Source: Guillardia theta CCMP2712
Lineage: Eukaryota; Protista; Cryptophyta
Direction of reading: 5' to 3'
Assembly (NCBI RefSeq): GCF_000315625.1
Contig: NW_005434670.1
Location: 1,070,258-1,134,257 of the forward strand
DNA length: 64,000 bases
Shown here piece by piece: positions 735 through 26,230 of the stretch (the stretch's first letter is position 1; the number at the start of each line of letters is the position of its first letter). A program made the translations under genes and the position numbers. The notes beneath the pieces were generated by a model. It was not told where the DNA came from. It did no database searches and saw only the letters and a program-made list of their open reading frames with translations.

Positions 735-3700
735 AAGAAAGAATAGTCTATTAACAATCTCTACTTCTCAACACTGCTTCTCACTGTACAACTGTGTTGC
801 GAAACTGTACATAAGACTTGTGCAGCCCCGACTTGAGGCTGTACATGTCGTGCAAGATCACCTTGACAGCCGCGCGTTAGAGGAGCAGACGGGCGAGAAA
901 AAGACAAGGAAGAAACAAGTAGCCACGACGATCAGCGAGCCAGACGGCAGGAGCAGGACGGGGGAGACAGCTTACCTGCATCTCACAGATATGACGATGG
1001 AGACCTTCGGTTGTCTCCCACTCGCTCAGAGGAACCAGCATGCAGCTGTTCATGATCGAGCTCTTGATGTACCCCACCTGCTCAACCTCAGATCGTAGGA
1101 CAGCTCAGGCGACAATGTCCTACCTCCACACAAACGCACACATCGCGATACCCGACCGTCTCATGCTTGTTGTATGCGGGATCATACCTGCGGTGAAGAT
1201 GAGGAGGAGAGGAGAGGAGGTGCGTGTCGTCAGCTCACCTGTTCTTGATGCATGTGATGCTCATGAACTTCTTGCTCAGCTCCACTCCCTCTCCCTCCGA
1301 CTCCTGCGGACACGAGACTCTCAGACGACTGTCGGTCGGCCCCCAAGACCAGCACAAGCTCACCTCAGCCCCATCAGGCTGCACTTTCCCCCTGTGCGGG
1401 AACCGCTTCTCGTACCCGAACGCAACCTCCGACGTCCTCATCAGATGCTCCACCCACCGCGTCAGCTCCGTCAGGTCCTTCACCACAATGCTGCACCGCA
1501 CGAGGTCCGTGAGCTTGGAGCAGTCTCGCTCGTAGGACCGCACGACTTTCTGCAGAGCGCGCGAGCATGTCTTGATGTTTCCCTGCTTCACCACTCCGTG
1601 CGCGTTCCACCGAGCCACGAAGTCCTGGAAAGGACCGCTCAGCTGCTGCGCTTCTTTGTACAAGAGCTCGATGTCGTTAGATCTTTGCCCCATCTTGAGA
1701 CGTTTGGAGATGCGGGGTTTGTACAGACCCATCAGGATCATCGCCTTCCGACCGAGGCCTCGTCGTTCTGTCTGCCGCGCAACGAGTAGGAGGGAGTTGA
1801 CTTGTCTGGTGAGCTGATACAAACGTTGTAGCATGTCGGCTTCGTTGCGTCTCATCCTGTTCCACGCCTCGCTGAACGCATTTGATTTTTCCTCCAGCTC
1901 CTCGTAGATCGCACGAAGCTTCAAGTAATACATCACAGGCATGGAAATGGCAAGACCAAGCAACACGGTGCCGTACACGTAGAACAAGTAAATGGCCCAC
2001 TGAGCGTTCTGCGCGAAGGTGGTGAAATAGAAGCAGTATGCTCCCTGGAGGAAAAAGACAACGACATAGAAGTACTGCTGTCTGACATGGGCAAAGAAAA
2101 GCCCTACCCAGATAAAGGCCGAAGTAGAAAGACTCCAATACCCATGACAAACAGAGCCGATGCCATTGCCTTGGAATTCACATTGTATGAAGTCCAACAT
2201 GGCGCAGATGACGTACATGAAGGAAACCAGCCAAGCCGTTGAGATCAGAATACGCCCTCCATTCAACGGCGTATTCCTGCGTGCCGCCATGATTCCCATG
2301 ACGTAACACATGGCCCAGAAGATGGAGATGGCTGGATCAGCCAACACTGACCATCGCAACACTTTGGGCTCGACAGGAACGTTGTTATCTGCTTGAAATA
2401 GCCAACGCCGTGTTCCAGTCAAGCCTTGTATCTCGTATGATGCAAAGATCAGGTAAATCATGCTCAAGCAACTGATGATGATCTGAGTAGGGGACTTGAG
2501 TAAACCAGTCTCAATGGCGTTGGAAGTCATCATGGCGAGCCACTGGTTGGCTTCGATGTCTCGATATCGCTCAAGCCGAGACTTGAGGCTTTGAAAGCGC
2601 ATCTCTGACCTCGCCAGGGTCACCGACTGCTTCAGCGCATCCATCGTCTGCTTGTTAAGCACAATGCTGTTGAAGTCTGGTAGCTCATACTCCACGCAGC
2701 TGTGCAGGCGTACGAAATCGTGCAGGTCCAAGTCAATCGCGCTGCGCAGCTGCTGTAGCGAGCTGATCCCCATGAGCGCGAGGATCTGCCTCAGGTCCTC
2801 CAGCAGACCCACAGACCTCAGCCACTCAATCATCTCCGAGGACCTCGGTCGATGCATGGTGAAGTCACTTTGAATCTTGAGGCTTTTCTTGTCCCAGACA
2901 ACCTTTACCGTCTCCATCAGAAAGGTCGCAGCATGCCAGGCAAACGATGAGTCTGACCCTTTGAGCACCAAGAACGAGGTCCTCAGATCCATCATCGGGA
3001 GGGTGAAGGCGTACTCTGACTGGCAAGACTCTCGTTCTTGTGGAGGCAGCAGGATTACAATCGCATCCTTGACTGAGATGTCAGCGATGACCTGGAAGTG
3101 CTTGTCGTTGTATATGCCCATCTTCTGGATGATTACCTTGGCTCGTTCGATGGTCTTCGTGGATGGTGCATGGCTCAAGGCGTTGATCATAGAGAAGGGA
3201 AAGTCGTCCGACCCAGCAGATCTGTCATCGACGAAGATGGGAGCGATCGCACGAATCCACCCAATGTTGTTGTACAGGAAGTAGATGGCTAGGATGATGT
3301 GTAAAAGGATCTCGCTCGACTCATCTTTTCCTTCCTCGGGGCGGATCGAAAGCAGTTTGTTCAAGGTACCTGTGCCCGTGTCATCAAGACTAACGAAAGG
3401 TGCGAAGAGGAGGCTGTTGGTGGAGCACAAGCAGTTGTCCAAGTAATGCGCCTTGCTGACAGCCGGGAGACATTCGAAGTCCAGGTACGTCTTCTCATTC
3501 GAAAACCTGTCGAACTCAAAATCTTCACACGTCTGTGTGGGCTTGTGCAGGAGGAAGGAGAAGGGCAACTGGCTGGAGAGCATGTGGAAGTTCTTGTGTA
3601 TCTCCTTCTGCCTCTGGACGCCCTGCCATTGAGTATCTCCCTGATCTGAGCCTGCCGACGGGGAGGCATTCTGGCTGACATGACTGTACAGCTCAGAGTG

Positions 3701-3850
3701 CGACCTGAACAAGAGAAAATAATCTGTGAAGAGACCGAAGTCCGAGCCAAACACAGTATGCTCCTCCATGGCAAGGATGAAAGCTTTAGGGGCTCCGATG
3801 TAACGGGCGAATCAAGAAATGAAGTATCATGGCGGGGTATGGTCAGGTAT
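735..3850. repeat. Left arm of a ~3.1-kb inverted segmental duplication (partner 6534-9649)
   Basis: Reverse complement of 6534-9649 with constant register (positions sum to 10384 at both ends and at the ATGs). Gapped similarity continues to ~682/9710. Confidence 0.97.
781..3769 (-). CDS. TIR-like/SAM-like/~6TM/RelA-SpoT-like nucleotidyltransferase protein, copy A (5 exons)
   Basis: Long first exon from 3769 plus four 3' introns mirroring copy B (coordinate = 10384 - x); stop at 783-781. Motifs: NIKTCSRALQKVVRSY, DLVRCSIV, KNRYDP..GYRDV, ICEMQV, HKSY; six hydrophobic segments. Confidence 0.85.
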
Positions 3851-6533: not shown

Positions 6534-9500
6534 ATACCTGACCATACCCCGCCATGATACTTCATTTCTTGATTCGCCCGTTACATTGGAGCCCCTAAAG
6601 CTTTCATCCTTGCCATGGAGGAGCATACTGTGTTTGGCTCGGACTTCGGTCTCTTCACAGATTATTTTCTCTTGTTCAGGTCGCACTCTGAGCTGTACAG
6701 TCATGTCAGCCAGAATGCCTCCCCGTCGGCAGGCTCAGATCAGGGAGATACTCAATGGCAGGGCGTCCAGAGGCAGAAGGAGATACACAAGAACTTCCAC
6801 ATGCTCTCCAGCCAGTTGCCCTTCTCCTTCCTCCTGCACAAGCCCACACAGACGTGTGAAGATTTTGAGTTCGACAGGTTTTCGAATGAGAAGACGTACC
6901 TGGACTTCGAATGTCTCCCGGCTGTCAGCAAGGCGCATTACTTGGACAACTGCTTGTGCTCCACCAACAGCCTCCTCTTCGCACCTTTCGTTAGTCTTGA
7001 TGACACGGGCACAGGTACCTTGAACAAACTGCTTTCGATCCGCCCCGAGGAAGGAAAAGATGAGTCGAGCGAGATCCTTTTACACATCATCCTAGCCATC
7101 TACTTCCTGTACAACAACATTGGGTGGATTCGTGCGATCGCTCCCATCTTCGTCGATGACAGATCTGCTGGGTCGGACGACTTTCCCTTCTCTATGATCA
7201 ACGCCTTGAGCCAAACGCCATCCACGAAGACCATCGAACGAGCCAAGGTAATCATCCAGAAGATGGGCATATACAACGACAAGCACTTCCAGGTCATCGC
7301 TGACATCTCAGTCAAGGATGCGATTGTAATCCTGCTGCCTCCTCAAGAACGAGAGTCTTGCCAGTCAGAGTACGCCTTCACCCTCCCGATGATGGATCTG
7401 AGGACCTCGTTCTTGGTGCTCAAAGGGTCAGACTCATCGTTTGCCTGGCATGCTGCGACCTTTCTGATGGAGACGGTAAAGGTTGTCTGGGACAAGAAAA
7501 GCCTCAAGATTCAAAGTGACTTCACCATGCATCGTCCGAGGTCCTCGGAGATGATTGAGTGGCTGAGGTCTGTGGGTCTGCTGGAGGACCTGAGGCAGAT
7601 CCTCGCGCTCATGGGGATCAGCTCGCTACAGCAGCTGCGCAGCGCGATTGACTTGGACCTGCACGATTTCGTACGCCTGCACAGCTGCGTGGAGTATGAG
7701 CTACCAGACTCCAACAGTGTACAGCTCATAAAGCAGTCGATGGATGCGCTGAAGCAGTCGGTGACCCTGGCGAGGTCAGAGATGCGCTTTCAAAGCCTCA
7801 AGTCTCGGCTTGAGCGATATCGAGACATCGAAGCCAACCAGTGGCTCGCCATGATGACTTCCAACGCCATTGAGACTGGTTTACTCCAGTCCCCTACTCA
7901 GATCATCATCTCAGGTGTTAGCATGATTTACCTGATCTTTGCATCATACGAGATACAAGGCTTGACTGGAACACGGCGTTGGCTATATCAAGCAGATAAC
8001 AACGTTCCTGTCGAGCCCAAAGTGTTACGATGGTCAGTGTTGGCTGATCCAGCCATCTCCATCTTCTGGGCAATTGGATACATTGTTGGGATCATGGCGG
8101 CACGCAGGAATACGCCGTTGAATGGAGGGCGTATTCTGATCTCAACGGCTTGGCTGGTTTCCTTCATGTACGTCGTCTGCGCCATGTTGGACTTCATACA
8201 ATGTGAATTCCAAGGCAATGGCATCGGCTCTGTTTGTCATGGGTATTGGAGTCTTTCTACTTCGGCCTTTATCTGGGTAGGGCTTTTCTTTGCCCATGTC
8301 AGACAGCAGTACTTCTATGTTGTGCTGTGTTTCCTCCAGGGAGCATACTGCTTGTACTTCACTACCTTCGCGCAGAACGCTCAGTGGGCCATTTACTTGT
8401 TCTACGTGTTCGGCACCATGTTACTTGTCTTTACCATTTCCATGCCTGTGATGTATTACTTGAAGCTTCGTGCGATCTACGAGGAGCTGGAGGAAAAATC
8501 AAATGCGTTCAGCGAGGCGTGGAACAGGATGAGACGCAACGAAGCCGACATGCTACAACGTTTGTATCAGCTCACCAGACAAGTCAACTCCCTCCTACTC
8601 GTTGCGCGGCAGACAGAACGACGAGGCCTGGGTCGGAAGGCGATGATCCTGATGGGTCTGTACAAACCCCGCATCTCCAAACGTCTCAAGATGGGGCAAA
8701 GATCTAACGACATCGAGCTCTTGTACAAAGAAGCGCAGCAGCTGAGCGGTCCTTTCCAGGACTTCGTGGCTCGGTGGAACGCGCACGGAGTGGTGAAGCA
8801 GGGAAACATCAAGACATGCTCGCGCGCTCTGCAGAAAGTCGTGCGGTCCTACGAGCGAGACTGCTCCAAGCTCACGGACCTCGTGCGGTGCAGCATTGTG
8901 GTGAAGGACCTGACGGAGCTGACGCGGTGGGTGGAGCATCTGATGAGGACGTCGGAGGTTGCGTTCGGGTACGAGAAGCGGTTCCCGCACAGGGGGAAAG
9001 TGCAGCCTGATGGGGCTGAGGTGAGCTTGTGCTGGTCTTGGGGGCCGACCGACAGTCGTCTGAGAGTCTCGTGACCGCAGGAGTCCGAGGGGGAGGGAGT
9101 GGAGCTGAGCAAGAAGTTCATGAGCATCACATGCATCAAGAACAGGTGAGCTGACGACACGCACCTCCTCTCCTCTCCTCCTCATCTTCACCGCAGGTAT
9201 GATCCCGCATACAACAAGCATGAGACGGTCGGGTATCGCGATGTGTGCGTTTGTGTGGAGGTAGGACATTGTCGCCTGAGCTGTCCTACGATCTGAGGTT
9301 GAGCAGGTGGGGTACATCAAGAGCTCGATCATGAACAGCTGCATGCTGGTTCCTCTGAGCGAGTGGGAGACAACCGAAGGTCTCCATCGTCATATCTGTG
9401 AGATGCAGGTAAGCTGTCTCCCCTGTCCTGCTCCTGCCGTCTGGCTCGCTGATCGTCGTGGCTACTTGTTTCTTCCTTGTCTTTTTCTCGCCCGTCTGCT

Positions 9501-9649
9501 CCTCTGACGCGCGGCTGTCAAGGTGATCTTGCACGACATGTACAGCCTCAAGTCGGGGCTGCATAAGTCTTACGTACAGTTTCGCAACACAGTTGTACAG
9601 TGAGAAGCAGTGTTGAGAAGTAGAGATTGTTAATAGACTATTCTTTCTT
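6534..9649. repeat. Right arm of the inverted segmental duplication (partner 735-3850); 2683-bp unique spacer
   Basis: atacctgaccatacccc at 6534 is the reverse complement of ggggtatggtcaggtat ending at 3850; taatagactattctttctt ending at 9649 matches 735 onward. Confidence 0.97.
6615..9603 (+). CDS. TIR-like/SAM-like/~6TM/RelA-SpoT-like nucleotidyltransferase protein, copy B (5 exons)
   Basis: Exons 6615-9020, 9081-9145, 9197-9260, 9307-9408, 9523-9603; GT-AG introns of 60, 51, 46 and 114 nt splice in frame to ...IKNRYDPAYNKHETVGYRDVCVCVEVGYIK...HICEMQVILHDMYSLKSGLHKSYVQFRNTVVQ*. The 5' end could extend upstream. Confidence 0.85.
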
Positions 9650-13483: not shown

Positions 13484-14486
13484 CCACCACCACCACCACC
13501 ACCACCACCACCACCACCACCACCACCACGTTTCTGACTGATCGAGATAGGACACTCTCAAGAGGTCAGAGGTTGAGGCTCCAAGGAGGAAAGGGACAAA
13601 GAGGAAGGAGGCAGAGGAGCCTGAAGAAAGGAATCTTGACCTGCTCGACTTGTCTCTACCCGATCAACAAGATTCATCGCGATGGGAAGAGCTTTTGAGG
13701 ACGGTGAAGCAGCGAATGGAAGCTTACAGGGAGGAGGAGAACCAGGGGGGGGGTATCTCTTCTGCCCCCGCACCTCCCCTTGCTCCTCCTCCTCCTCCTC
13801 CTCCTGCCTCCGATCTCTCGCTCCCTACCTTCTCCCATCAAGACCAGCAGGCTCATCTTCCGCTCCCAGTGCCCCTGGAGGCTGTGAACTTGCCCGAGGA
13901 GGAGAGGATGAGCAGGGAGCTGGAGGCAGAGCTGGAAGAAGCGCTGGCTGAGGAGGAAGCGGAGGAGGAGGGGAGCAGGAGGAGAAGGGAAGAAGCGAAC
14001 AAACGACGGGTGCACGCCAGCACGCATCAAGGAGCAGGAAGCAGAAGGAGGAGGCAAGAGGAGGCGGTGGAGGTCGCGAGGACAAAGAAAGTGGAGAGCA
14101 GAAGGAAAGGAGGAGAAGAGACGAGAAAGGCGGAGGCGGGGAAGAGGAAGAGACCGGAGCAGGAAGCAAAAGGAAGGAAGAAGCCTCAACGGATTGCAAG
14201 CAGCAGGGGAACGCGAACGAGGAGGAGACGAGGAGACGAGTGGGAAGAGGAGAGGTGAGTTGATCCTCCTTGCTGTGCCGGTCGCTCATGCAAGTACAGG
14301 TTGTCGGAGGAGGAGCAAGAGAAGGAGCAGGCGAGCCAGAGCGAGAGGTTCAGGACGGGAGAGACTGTGTGGACGGAGGAAGCAGTGAAAAGCTTCTTGG
14401 AGCTGACTAGGAGGATGGACTTGACCAGGAAGTGCTTCCTTGCTGCTCTGCCCACCCCTGCTGCCCTGCTGCGGGAAGACGGTTGA
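11934..14486 (+). CDS. SNAPC1: snRNA-activating protein complex subunit 1-like (SNAP43 domain) with a long low-complexity, charged C-terminus (3' end approximate)
   Basis: LQTRVKALFLLHCVFYSQ..KKEPILLTPASWRHVLDL...DFCSAFRMLYMAGAMRFAAVP resembles the recalled SNAPC1 core (FQIRVGALYLLYGLYNTQ..KIRVALKDW...DAAYIFRKLRLDRAFHFTAMP). Downstream exons include 13650-14253 and 14300-14486. Confidence 0.7.
13433..13529. repeat. Compound (CTC)n(ATC)n(ACC)n microsatellite, probably intronic
   Basis: Directly visible trinucleotide runs. Confidence 0.95.
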
Positions 14487-14646
14487 CAGCAGGAGAAGAG
14501 TTGAGACGGAGGAGACTGACGGAGAGCAGAGGGACAGAAGCTTGTAAAGGAGGAGGGAGGAGGGAGGAGAGAGGGAGGGAGGATGGTGGTGGTGGATGAG
14601 GGAGGAGAAGGATGAGGACATGGATTCATTAAACGAGTAGGAGGCG

Positions 14647-15983
14647 TCATGAGCGGTCCAGCTCCTCGGAACCCGCGAAGACGGACGGGAGGATCTGTAT
14701 GTGACGAGCGTAACGATGAACGAAGAGCGCGAGCCTGCCGCAGCAATGAGGAGGAGGAGACAGACAGCAGAGGAGGAGGGAGGGAGGGAGGAGGGAGAAC
14801 AAGACAACTGGAGGATGGACAAAGCTATCACCTTCCCTTGACCAGAGACAACTCGTCCTCTCCTTGCAGTGAAAGTCAGGGTGTCGGAGGGGAGACCCAG
14901 GAGGAAGAGGAAAGTAGCGGACAAGGAGCGGGAAAGGGTGACAGTGGAAAGAGGGGGAAGAATATCATGGGAGGAGAGGAGAATAAAGAGTCGGCACAGG
15001 CGATGGTGCGAGGATGAGCAAAAACAGGAGCAGAAGCAGAAGCAGGAACGAGGAACGAGGAATGGAGGAGGATAGGAAGCGGAGAGAGTTTTACCCTCAA
15101 TGAAGTTTTCAAAGGTGATGAGATCCTGGCGGAGAGGAAGCGAGAGCGAGAGGTGAGCGTTGGCAACCTGTAGGAAGGGAGGAGAACAGGGGAAGGAGCA
15201 AGGAAAAGTCAGCAGATGATGGAGTTGATACTCGGCTGAGATGGAGAAGAAAGGAAGGAGAAGAGAAGGGAGAGGAGAGGAGAGGAGAGGAGAGGAGAGG
15301 AGAGGAGAGGAGAGGAGATCAAACGAAGAAACACTTACAACTTGAAGAATCTGAGCGTCGGTGAAGGACACTTGCTAGAGAGCACAAGTCAAGAATCAAA
15401 CCAATTTACAAATAGAAAAGTCTACTATAAAGCCCTTCCCACCCTCCTCATCATCATCCTATCACCCCCTCCACACCATTCTCCTCCTCCTCCTCCTCCT
15501 CCACCACGGACACGCGCGCCCAATAACGACCTGAAGGTGACTGAGCTGCTGGAGCATTTGAAGACGTCGCTAAACAGCTTCGAGGCGTCGCTTGCCGAAA
15601 AGGATGAGCGCGACAAGGCAGCGACGTCGAGCTTCGAGGCCGAGCTGTCAGCGGCAAAGAAGGGAGCTCATCGCCTCTTGCCTGTCGCCCAGCCCNNNNN
15701 NNNNNNNNNNNNNNNNNNNNNNNNNNNNNNNNNNNNNNNNNNNNNNNNNNNNNNNNNNNNNNNNNNNNNNNNNNNNNNNNNNNNNNNNNNNNNNNTGCTC
15801 TCCTCCTCTTATCTTCTCCCTCCTCACCTGTAGCTGACACTCCATTCCATCTCTCGTGCAGGACGTAAGGAGCTTATTGAAGACCTGAATCACTCCATTC
15901 AGGAGTAGAGCATAAGAACTGGAGCAGGACGATAGAGTTGCATTATCAGCAGGAGGAAGAAGAACAAGACGAAGACAAGGTCC

Positions 15984-16022
<39 letters not shown>

Positions 16023-23882: not shown

Positions 23883-24335
23883 GCATTGCCGGCCTGGGAA
23901 CTTTCAAAAGTTTCTGGGGACTCAACTCAGTTGAAAAATCAGCCTCTGAAGTTCCGGGGCCCCGGCGGGCGCCGGGCCGGGCCGAAGTTCCGAACTTCGG
24001 AAGCCAACCGTGAACTTCAAGTCACGAGTCCCCCGCTGCCGGCGGCCGCGCAAGCCAGTGGCCCGGGCGAAGGCAGACGGTAAGACCGTACGGTACAGTC
24101 ACGGTAGCCAAGTTTTTTCACAAGGCTGACTCCGCGCGGAAGTTGATCACGGTTCTCAGGTTGTACTGTGTACGGTAGTATCAGCCGGGCCGCCGGCAGA
24201 ACTCGGAAGCTTTAGTAAGCCAAGTTAAAAATCATGGCACGGTACCGTGGACAATCATGGCGATCACTGGGCTCTCAGGACTCGGAGCCAGTGGCCTCGG
24301 ACCTGCGCGGCGGCGGCCCGGTAACGCCGGGTCAA
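23883..24335. promoter_or_regulatory. GC/CCGG-rich island immediately upstream of the DBHS-like gene
   Basis: CCGG, GGCCG, GAACTTC/GAAGTTC, CACGGT and CGTACG words; begins ~50 bp from the ATG at 23835. Function inferred. Confidence 0.35.
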
Positions 24336-25170
24336 CCGCAAAAAGCAAATCGAGCGCTACAAGTGTCGGATCTGAGATTCGAACTCAGGTTGCCACGGCC
24401 ACAACGTGGAGTACTGACCGCTATACGAATCCGACATTGTATGTGATATAGTGCCTTACGCCTCATGGCCGAAGATGCTGAATGCAGAGATGATGCGCCT
24501 CTTGCTCAGCTTCTACTTGCTCTTCCTCTATGCTCCCTCCATGCTCCCTCCTCCTCCTCCTCCTCCCCTCCTCCTCCTCTCTTGCTTCATGTCATTACTT
24601 CCATCCTAGCTTACTGCCGATGCCCAACCCTGATTCTCCCTTCCGCATCCTCCAAACCGCTGGCCCATACCTTGTTCCTGCCATCCCTTAACCTTCTTGT
24701 GCTGATTTCCTCCCTCCTCCTGCTGTCGTTGCTTTTTTTCAGCTTGTTCTTTACCCTTACCTTGAGACAGGATCGACTAGGTGCAGAGAGGGCACGACTG
24801 CGTCGCTTCACTTGTTTGCTTTCCTCGACTTCCGACATTCATGGATAACATTAGGATTCGTCGTTATCATGTTCATTCTTGTGGGAAAGTCTCTACAGTT
24901 ACAATGTCGCTGCAATGATCAACGCAACGTGGCATTAGACGTTCGTTGCATGTTCCTTTCCTCCATACTGATGGAATAGCTTGGTGTTGGTCTTCAATTT
25001 CACCCAGCTCGACGTTGTGGCCGATTAACAGAATTCTTCTTGTTTCCTCCTTCCTAACTAGCTCTTGTCCAGCCTTTCCTTTCTGAACATCTTTGACTAG
25101 TCCTCCCTCTCTCTCGCTACCTCCTTCCTCTGCCGTGTTAATCTCTTTCTTGTCTCGCCTCATCCCATCC

Positions 25171-25528
25171 CGTCTCATCTACTCTCATCTCATCTACTCT
25201 CATCTCATCCCGTCTCATCTCGTCTACTCTCATCCCTTCTACTCTCATCTCGTCTACTCTCATCTCATCCCGTCTCATCTAATCTACTCACATCTCATCT
25301 ACCCCCATCTCATCTACCCTCATCTCATCTACCCCCATCTCATCTACCCTCATCTCATCTACCCTCATCTCATCTACCCTCATCTCATCTACCCTCATCT
25401 CATCTACCCTCATCTCATCTACCCTCATCTCATCTACCCCCATCTCATCTACTCTCATCTCGTCTACTCACATCTCATCTACCCCCATCTCATCTACTCT
25501 CATCTCATCTACTCTCATCTCATCTACT
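25171..25528. repeat. 15-bp minisatellite (CATCTCATCTACYCN), ~24 copies
   Basis: Visible tandem array with a homogeneous core and degenerate left edge; no unique spacers. Confidence 0.95.
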
Positions 25529-26230
25529 TGAACTTTCATCTCGTCTCGTCTCGTCCTCAAGGCTGCTCTTGGCTTGAGCACCCCCTGATGCGGGGAGGCG
25601 GGCTTGAAATTTAGGTTCTCGCATACCCCTACTAACGATAAATAAAAGAGGGGTAGGGGTACACATCACCAAGAGCCACCATGCGTTTCGCTATCGTTCC
25701 AATCATCTTCGCCCGCAACAGCAACGGAGGTAGATCGAATGAACACCATACTTCCATGCTAGCATCATTCTTGCTGTCTTGCTCTGCCTGCTTGCTCTGT
25801 GTTACCTTCTAAGCCTATTGTTCAGTGCCCTCACCATCTACTTTGTCTGTCTGCTGAATTTTGTTTGCGTTGGTTTGGCATAGTTTCATCTGTCTCTTCA
25901 CTGACTTATCAGTCTTTTTGCGTTTTTACTCCTCTTCTTACATTGTTTATCTTTTCTAATCCGAAAATGTTTTCTTTTTGCTGTCGCCATGTATCTGAGG
26001 CTACTATAAGACTTTTCTGTGATTTTAGTATTTCGAGAACTAGGGGCCCGATGCAAGTATGAATGTACAATCATGAATATCTGAGGGTGTGTATGCATGT
26101 TAGTGTGGGGGCATCAGTAGACGCTCAGGTTGGCAGGTTAGTTCGAGTGTTGAAAGTTCGAGTGTTGAAAGCAAACAAGAGGGGAGGTCGATCGTAAAAC
26201 AAACTTCACTGCTCCGCTAACAAGAGCGCA

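Follow-up and report, generated by a model that had tools for sequence, protein, structure and literature searches.

Within a 64,000-nucleotide stretch of the cryptophyte Guillardia theta CCMP2712 (the window; NCBI RefSeq assembly GCF_000315625.1, contig NW_005434670.1, positions 1,070,258 to 1,134,257 of the forward strand), one gene encodes a membrane protein with a TIR domain at its N-terminus and a Tas1-like domain at its other end. TIR domains are now regarded as ancestral immune enzymes that cleave nicotinamide adenine dinucleotide (NAD+). By homology and by fold, amino acids (aa) ~14-305 of this protein, the query in the following, are a genuine, divergent member of the TIR domain family. 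The residues of the catalytic pocket have been lost, and the structural core is kept under purifying selection. Most likely, therefore, this TIR is non-catalytic and would serve the Tas1-like synthetase in assembly or regulation. Positions of all features, counted from the first nucleotide of the window, are collected in Table 1.

The N-terminal domain is a divergent TIR domain

A sequence-only reading of the window had proposed a degenerate TIR-like domain on the basis of five motif strings. All five are present where that reading had placed them and in the same order, within a single open reading frame (ORF; 6615-9074, +, 819 aa), and in an AlphaFold2 model they fall on betaA, betaB, betaC, alphaC and betaD as proposed. 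Its domain end at 7270 proved too short: betaE and alphaE carry the fold to ~7530, and structural alignments extend to model residues 278-285. The Guillardia theta assembly (87 Mb, 669 contigs) encodes at least 12 full-length paralogues with 28-37% identity to the query. In their alignment the conserved blocks are these same motifs, and distant paralogues show them in textbook TIR-like form (FHFFLSYRV, FLDxxCLxDGK, LxFVPxLS, DNVLLEYIIA and SIxPIL).

Evidence for homology comes from profile comparisons. A hidden Markov model was built from 73 family members that retain the catalytic glutamate (Glu-keepers), with the query's entire clade left out. It matched query aa 1-310 with 81.1 bits (E = 3.9e-27), and the best of 1,000 shuffles reached 5.7 bits. 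Canonical TIR_2 loci number at least 16 elsewhere in the G. theta genome. Against ten of these bona fide domains, hhalign of the 87-sequence family alignment gave 92% (E = 6.7e-7) across 101 columns, which keep register between betaA and betaD. Pfam TIR_2 is matched at E <= 0.01 by 32 of the 87 family members (best E = 1.3e-8), and two G. theta paralogues (L017, L018) score 16 bits, under the cutoff of 28 bits. Among PDB sequences, the family profile found the TIR domains of L6 (E = 0.005) and Roq1 (E = 0.045) and many SARM1 TIR entries (E = 0.014-0.12), together with a nucleoside 2-deoxyribosyltransferase. The 87-sequence profile was needed for this, as a 14-paralogue profile run against PDB sequences gave no TIR match, just a weak one to TAF1.

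The flavodoxin-like TIR fold expected by the sequence-only reading is indeed predicted. The AlphaFold2 model m433bf696530e (aa 12-306, made from the 87-sequence alignment) has a predicted local distance difference test score (pLDDT) of 76, above 90 in the core, and a predicted template modelling score of 0.79. In the wide VIA structural search, which is independent of Foldseek, its best nine matches are all TIR domains, covered over their whole length, with Z scores of 8.2-9.6 and root-mean-square deviations (rmsd) of 2.8-4.2 A. TIRAP (Z 9.6) leads, followed by SARM1 (Z 9.5, rmsd 3.0 A, 16% identity, 139 of 140 residues); the others are RPS4, Cat1, IL-1RAcP, IL-18Rbeta, TIR-1, RPP1 and MyD88. 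An earlier, shallower model led to the same result.

For the helical insertion between betaD and betaE, weak similarity to human and yeast TAF1 was found repeatedly (E = 0.005-0.018, ~residues 999-1097 of 6mzl_A), with the common pattern 'A..LL..FGVPEE.....S...V.DVV'.

Table 1. Features of the gene, its encoded domains and the neighbouring twin gene, by position in the window
Feature	Position	Strand	Residues and basis
Whole gene	6615..9603	+	902 codons predicted; ORF, Hanusia phi orthologue P0152 and GT..AG introns
Exons	6615-9020, 9090-9145, 9197-9260, 9307-9408, 9523-9603	+	
TIR-like domain	6654..7530	+	aa ~14-305; AlphaFold2 model, structural search, hhalign, clade-excluded hidden Markov model
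betaA motif DYFLLFRS	6660..6683	+	aa 16-23; strand FLLF aa 18-21; Arg22 retained
betaB YLDFECL	6897..6917	+	aa 95-101; strand aa 94-96; Asp97 retained
betaC NSLLFAPFVS	6966..6995	+	aa 118-127; strand aa 125-128; Phe122 and Pro124 family-invariant
alphaC DESSEILLHIILAIYFLY	7059..7112	+	helix aa 153-166; pLDDT >90
DESSEILLHIILA, alphaC string of the sequence-only reading	7059-7097	+	aa 149-161
Glu153 codon	7071-7073	+	-4 position relative to His157
His157 codon	7083-7085	+	catalytic-Glu column
betaD IRAIAPIFV	7128..7154	+	aa 172-180; strand aa 178-181; Pro177 invariant
Helical insertion betaD-betaE	7167..7400	+	aa ~185-262; family motif LPxxPSxxT...A...L...GV...SVK
betaE and alphaE, closing the TIR fold	7413..7529	+	betaE aa 267-270, alphaE aa 276-305; AlphaFold2 model
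SAM-like helical module	7539..7664	+	aa ~309-350; sub-threshold Pfam and hhalign matches
Membrane region	7896..8450	+	aa ~428-612; 5-6 predicted transmembrane helices; Kyte-Doolittle peaks and loop charges
RSH-like (RelA/SpoT-homologue), Tas1-like domain	8682..9603	+	split by four introns; profile A6
Head-to-head twin gene	1235..3769	-	97% identical; TIR-like domain 2 aa different, same His

Loss of the catalytic positions

According to the sequence-only reading, a histidine stands where NADase TIRs have their catalytic glutamate, and a glutamate lies four residues earlier. Three independent alignments agree with this. His157 aligns on the Glu of TIR_2 NCRRE, on that of SARM1 DCKDWVHKE and on that of the Glu-keeper profile, and Glu153 is the residue at -4; His157 also aligns with the Glu of the HVLMEW motif of a validated NADase. 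By residue count the aligned SARM1 glutamate is E642, and the Ser of its FISYRR motif is S567. The column is Glu in 76 of the 87 family members, and the alphaC motif of the family, DNVLLE, reads SEILLH in the query.

The change extends to the surrounding pocket. SARM1 S567 has been reported to stand 2.6 A from the glutamate and to be necessary for NADase activity (bioRxiv 10.1101/2025.04.09.647920). The equivalent betaA serine is present in 87% of the Glu-keepers; the query has Leu20 there by strand register, or Asp16 by MAFFT alignment. The BB-loop glycine (93% of the Glu-keepers) is Val104 in the query and S, L or P in paralogues. The Trp, Gly and Phe that follow this glycine, and the Asp-Asn of DNVLLE, are all replaced in the query's subclade. 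Positions L96, D97, P124, D149, L155, A161, P177, L198 and S203 of the core are kept. Features of a catalytic TIR include the Glu in alphaC, the betaA Ser and the BB-loop Gly, and the query has none of these residues. NADase activity has thus probably been lost in this TIR.

A protist TIR subfamily with validated NADases

The query belongs to a family whose profile, made from the N-terminal domains, was searched against 1.84 billion proteins; it matched 385 cluster representatives at E <= 1e-3, of which 98 reached E <= 1e-10. Its named members come from the cryptophytes Hanusia phi, Hemiselmis andersenii and Baffinella frigidus, from Picozoa, a chrysophyte, Lithocolla globosa and the choanoflagellate Salpingoeca kvevrii. 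Their architectures are diverse, PH-MORN, kinase-LRR and ARM among them, and the subfamily signature is FISYR ... LDxxCLxDG ... VFVPxxS ... DNVLLE ... IxP, together with helices inserted ahead of betaE.

A 2026 preprint reported that a G. theta TIR makes cyclic ADP-ribose (cADPR) and depletes NAD+, and that the catalytic glutamate was needed in all TIRs tested (bioRxiv 10.64898/2026.04.20.719644). The G. theta sequence tested is L1IYH1, as printed in the supplement, and the tested Salpingoeca rosetta TIR, F2UB80, carries a literal DNVLLEW motif (same preprint). Locus L046 (C63:189344-189919) encodes exactly the L1IYH1 sequence, and the family profile matches this locus with E = 2e-31. The family hence contains bona fide NADases. 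Compared directly by BLASTP, the query domain and the L1IYH1 TIR show no significant similarity (E = 0.52); hhalign of a small paralogue profile against the single L1IYH1 sequence was weak (37%, E = 3.6e-4), yet in register. UniProt entries in the preprint's supplement such as L1JXD3_2, which has a His at the Glu position, could not be mapped to the present locus (bioRxiv 10.64898/2026.04.20.719644).

Several observations concern the family as such. Its loci in the genome number at least 24, including a tandem array of three (C37:146469-157723), two on contig C117 and a pair of 572-aa Glu-keepers on C49. Runs of N, which may be assembly gaps, break two paralogue loci, L007 (C524) and L012 (C37), and both gene models are incomplete. 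A metagenomic protein of 1175 aa (P0045) combines the subfamily domain (aa 482-690) with a TIR_2 domain that is canonical by Pfam (aa 133-244, 29 bits).

The presence of active TIR NADases from this family in G. theta speaks for a further explanation, in which the query domain would be a ligand sensor and not a passive scaffold. Its Glu-less pocket would bind NAD+, or a nucleotide signal made by the TIRs of the active paralogues, and gate the Tas1-like synthetase. The conserved fold core fits this idea, and the fusion to an RSH-like enzyme resembles a signal-to-effector logic. However, the residues that line the pocket (Ser, Asp-Asn, Glu and BB loop) are exactly those that were lost, and we regard the idea as unlikely. 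Low odds are likewise given to a receptor-type pseudo-TIR that would sense NAD+ or a cADPR-type signal from active TIR paralogues and switch on the membrane-anchored Tas1-like synthetase. If true, a eukaryote would here pass a TIR signal on to an alarmone-like messenger, in analogy to the signal-to-effector logic of bacterial Thoeris.

Origin of the loss and selection on the domain

The 11 Glu-less sequences group together in a maximum-likelihood tree, which calls for a single Glu-loss change (Shimodaira-Hasegawa-like approximate likelihood ratio test, SH-aLRT, 81). The loss thus has a single origin, in one subclade. The group is nested in a clade with a support of 98, and its sister, consisting of paralogues L007 and L008 and a Hanusia protein, has an equal membrane architecture and keeps the Glu. 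The site has varied since then: H, Y, V and L all occur, and His is thus not a conserved substitute.

Against the Hanusia orthologue, the Nei-Gojobori ratio of non-synonymous to synonymous substitution rates (dN/dS) is 0.067 for aa 14-306, with dS saturated, compared with 0.11 for the transmembrane region and 0.145 for the combined coiled-coil and RSH region. The TIR-like domain is under strong purifying selection and is maintained, not decaying. A decaying, functionless remnant would be compatible with the loss of several catalytic residues, with the poor prediction of aa 24-93 and with the low conservation of this stretch among paralogues. Against it stand a dN/dS lower than in the other two regions, core residues that are invariant in ~8 paralogues, and twin gene copies that differ at just 2 residues of the domain. 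We consider decay very improbable.

In the preferred reading, that of a non-catalytic TIR, the pocket was dismantled in one step on the subclade branch: His157 took the place of the Glu and Leu or Asp that of the betaA Ser, and substitutions also removed the BB-loop Gly, the Trp and the Asp-Asn of DNVLLE. The structural core was retained and is still under strong purifying selection. Together with the SAM-like module, the TIR would then probably serve self-association or regulation at the cytosolic side of a membrane protein of about six helices, whose enzymatic output would likely be the C-terminal Tas1-like RSH nucleotide pyrophosphokinase domain. The sequence-only reading had inferred a scaffolding pseudo-enzyme, which agrees with pocket residues that were lost in concert in a domain still subject to purifying selection.

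SAM-like, membrane and RSH-like regions

The regions of the protein follow one another in the order TIR, SAM-like, transmembrane and RSH-like. Directly after the TIR-like domain, SAM_1, SAM_2 or SAM_KSR1 give sub-threshold Pfam matches at the same place in five of five relatives. The best scores, found on a paralogue, are 20.4 bits for SAM_1 (cutoff 23) and 19.8 bits for SAM_2 (cutoff 20.5); the Hanusia orthologue matches SAM_2 with E = 0.016. No SAM match (PF00536 or PF07647) above the gathering score was found in the relatives checked. By hhalign, nine bona fide G. theta SAM_2 domains are matched with 82% (E = 1e-5) over just 39 columns, which cover the first helices. Of the adjoining SAM domain proposed by the sequence-only reading, the location and a partial resemblance stand, and the module is better called SAM-like.

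Five clear hydrophobic peaks and one weaker segment, the fourth helix, make up the membrane region. The predicted count is 5 or 6, and six helices with both termini inside would agree with the positive-inside rule. Both ends of the protein are probably cytosolic.

For the C-terminal domain we worked with the natural Hanusia protein and with intron-free paralogues, not with joined exons of the query gene. The resulting profile, A6, matches Tas1 (6ox6_A) with E = 2.7e-6, which supports the RSH-like output domain of the sequence-only reading. Tas1 is a (p)ppApp-synthetase toxin of the RelA/SpoT fold. RSH-like motifs (K..RA.QK, TDLVRC, GYRD and HICExQ) are invariant, and the best match to Pfam RelA_SpoT is E = 0.033, in one relative only. 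The domain is presumably active. Pfam and NCBIfam searches with the 819-aa ORF and with its N-terminal 230 aa gave no relevant match; standard annotation of this kind detects none of the domains of this protein.

Evidence against a non-catalytic TIR, and alternative explanations

A number of results weigh against our reading. The query itself has no match to Pfam TIR_2 (PF13676) or TIR (PF01582) at E < 10. Foldseek searches of PDB with both models gave nothing significant, the best TIR being L6 (E = 0.15, probability 0.8). The ESM Atlas shape search was non-specific and returned generic flavodoxin-like matches with template modelling scores of ~0.4. The VIA Z scores of 8-9.6 are just moderately over background, and aa 24-93 are poorly modelled. 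The position at -4, occupied by Glu153 in the query, is Asp or Glu in 9 of the 11 Glu-less sequences, compared with 1 of the 76 Glu-keepers, and the catalytic acid could have relocated there. Finally, a topology of five transmembrane helices in place of six would put the membrane between the TIR and RSH domains.

The first of these results would suit a generic flavodoxin-like fold, or chance motifs, with ILLHIILAIYFLY as a transmembrane helix. Flavodoxins and GTPases do occur among the Atlas matches and the lower-ranked VIA matches, the query lacks a Pfam match, and Kyte-Doolittle hydropathy in a 19-residue window has a peak of 1.72 at aa 154-172. A transmembrane helix at aa 154-172, the observation that by the sequence-only reading's own account would have spoken against a TIR, was considered and rejected: ILLHIILAIYFLY is alphaC, modelled with pLDDT >90, and the helix is conserved in soluble family members of PH-MORN and kinase-LRR architecture. 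Sequence profiles, beyond the fold, link the domain to TIR. A generic fold is hence an explanation to which we attach almost no weight.

The acid at -4 bears on a different alternative, namely that this TIR still processes NAD+, either with a catalytic acid moved by one helical turn to Glu153 or with His157 supporting other chemistry. Catalytic residues can migrate, as stated in a pseudoenzyme review (PMC10211241), and the strength of purifying selection would suit an enzyme. The covariation at -4, however, amounts to a single event in one clade and resembles a DN -> S[D/E] remodelling; the replacement of the Glu is not fixed, and one paralogue has His at -4. Moreover, the Ser567 equivalent and the BB-loop Gly are gone as well, and the Glu is essential in every eukaryotic TIR tested (bioRxiv 10.64898/2026.04.20.719644). 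A persisting NAD+-processing activity therefore appears improbable, and a TIR that serves assembly or regulation remains our preferred reading.

Gene structure and neighbouring features

The long ORF does not correspond to the full protein. All four introns of the gene have GT..AG borders (4/4), and the in-frame TGA that closes the ORF (9072-9074) lies inside intron 1 (69 nt and itself in frame, 9021-9089, GTGAGC...AG). The spliced C-terminus is seen in the transcript-derived Hanusia phi orthologue P0152, which is 77% identical to the query over 805 aa, shares the Met start and keeps His157. The head-to-head twin gene has TGC at the place of this TGA, and its ORF runs 25 codons further. Gene calls based on ORFs would therefore mis-end both genes.

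Divergence between the twins (1235-3769, -, and 6615-9074, +) is mosaic. dS is 0.011 in the TIR-like region, 0.008 in the combined coiled-coil and RSH region and 0.126 in the transmembrane region, where 19 non-synonymous changes are found. This suggests either gene conversion at both ends or faster evolution of the membrane module.

Elsewhere in the window, very strong skews in strand composition are found at 14001-16000 (GC skew +0.30, AT skew +0.39) and at 24001-26000 (GC skew -0.30, AT skew -0.24), and a tRNA-His (GTG) gene lies at 24363-24435 on the reverse strand.

Comparison with known systems

A description of the combination of TIR, SAM-like, transmembrane and RSH regions was not found in the literature searched, and the rows listed in the supplementary tables of bioRxiv 10.64898/2026.04.20.719644 contain no TIR protein annotated as RelA/SpoT. 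Within a single genome, the family allows a natural comparison of sister clades. These have the membrane and Tas1-like architecture in common, the pocket is kept in one and dismantled in the other, and both are under selection. This allows testing how an enzymatic TIR becomes a non-catalytic module. The contribution of a TIR can likewise be tested in a eukaryotic membrane protein that is similar, at its other end, to a bacterial (p)ppApp-synthetase toxin.

The protist 'DNVLLE' subfamily represented by L1IYH1 and F2UB80 has the motif order, the helical insertion with LPxxPSxxT and the fold in common with the query. The L1IYH1 and F2UB80 TIRs keep the Glu (HVLMEW and DNVLLEW) and are active, cADPR-producing NADases, whereas in the query His157 replaces the Glu, and the Ser, the BB-loop Gly and the Asp-Asn are missing; the architectures of the host proteins differ as well.

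SARM1 and Caenorhabditis elegans TIR-1 are among the best structural matches, and their FISYR and D.V..E motifs align. Both SARM1 and the query pair a TIR with a SAM-type module. SARM1, however, is an ARM-SAM-SAM-TIR NADase, and the query has the reverse order, TIR and then SAM-like, with a single, partial SAM-like module and no ARM match in Pfam. The query further differs from SARM1 in lacking the equivalents of E642 and S567, in being membrane-embedded and in having an additional RSH-like enzyme domain.

The adaptor TIRs of MyD88 and TIRAP/MAL share the TIR fold, TIRAP being the top structural match, and serve assembly and not catalysis. Their sequence kinship to the query is no closer than that of the TIR superfamily in general. 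Unlike the query, the animal adaptor TIRs are not fused to transmembrane or enzyme domains, and in the query the catalytic residues were lost recently, in a change that can be followed inside a single gene family.

Tas1, other RSH toxins and the small alarmone synthetases have the K..RA.QK, D.VR, GYRD and E.Q motifs in common with the C-terminus of the query. In contrast to Tas1, the query protein is eukaryotic, membrane-anchored, encoded by an intron-split gene and fused to TIR and SAM-like domains.

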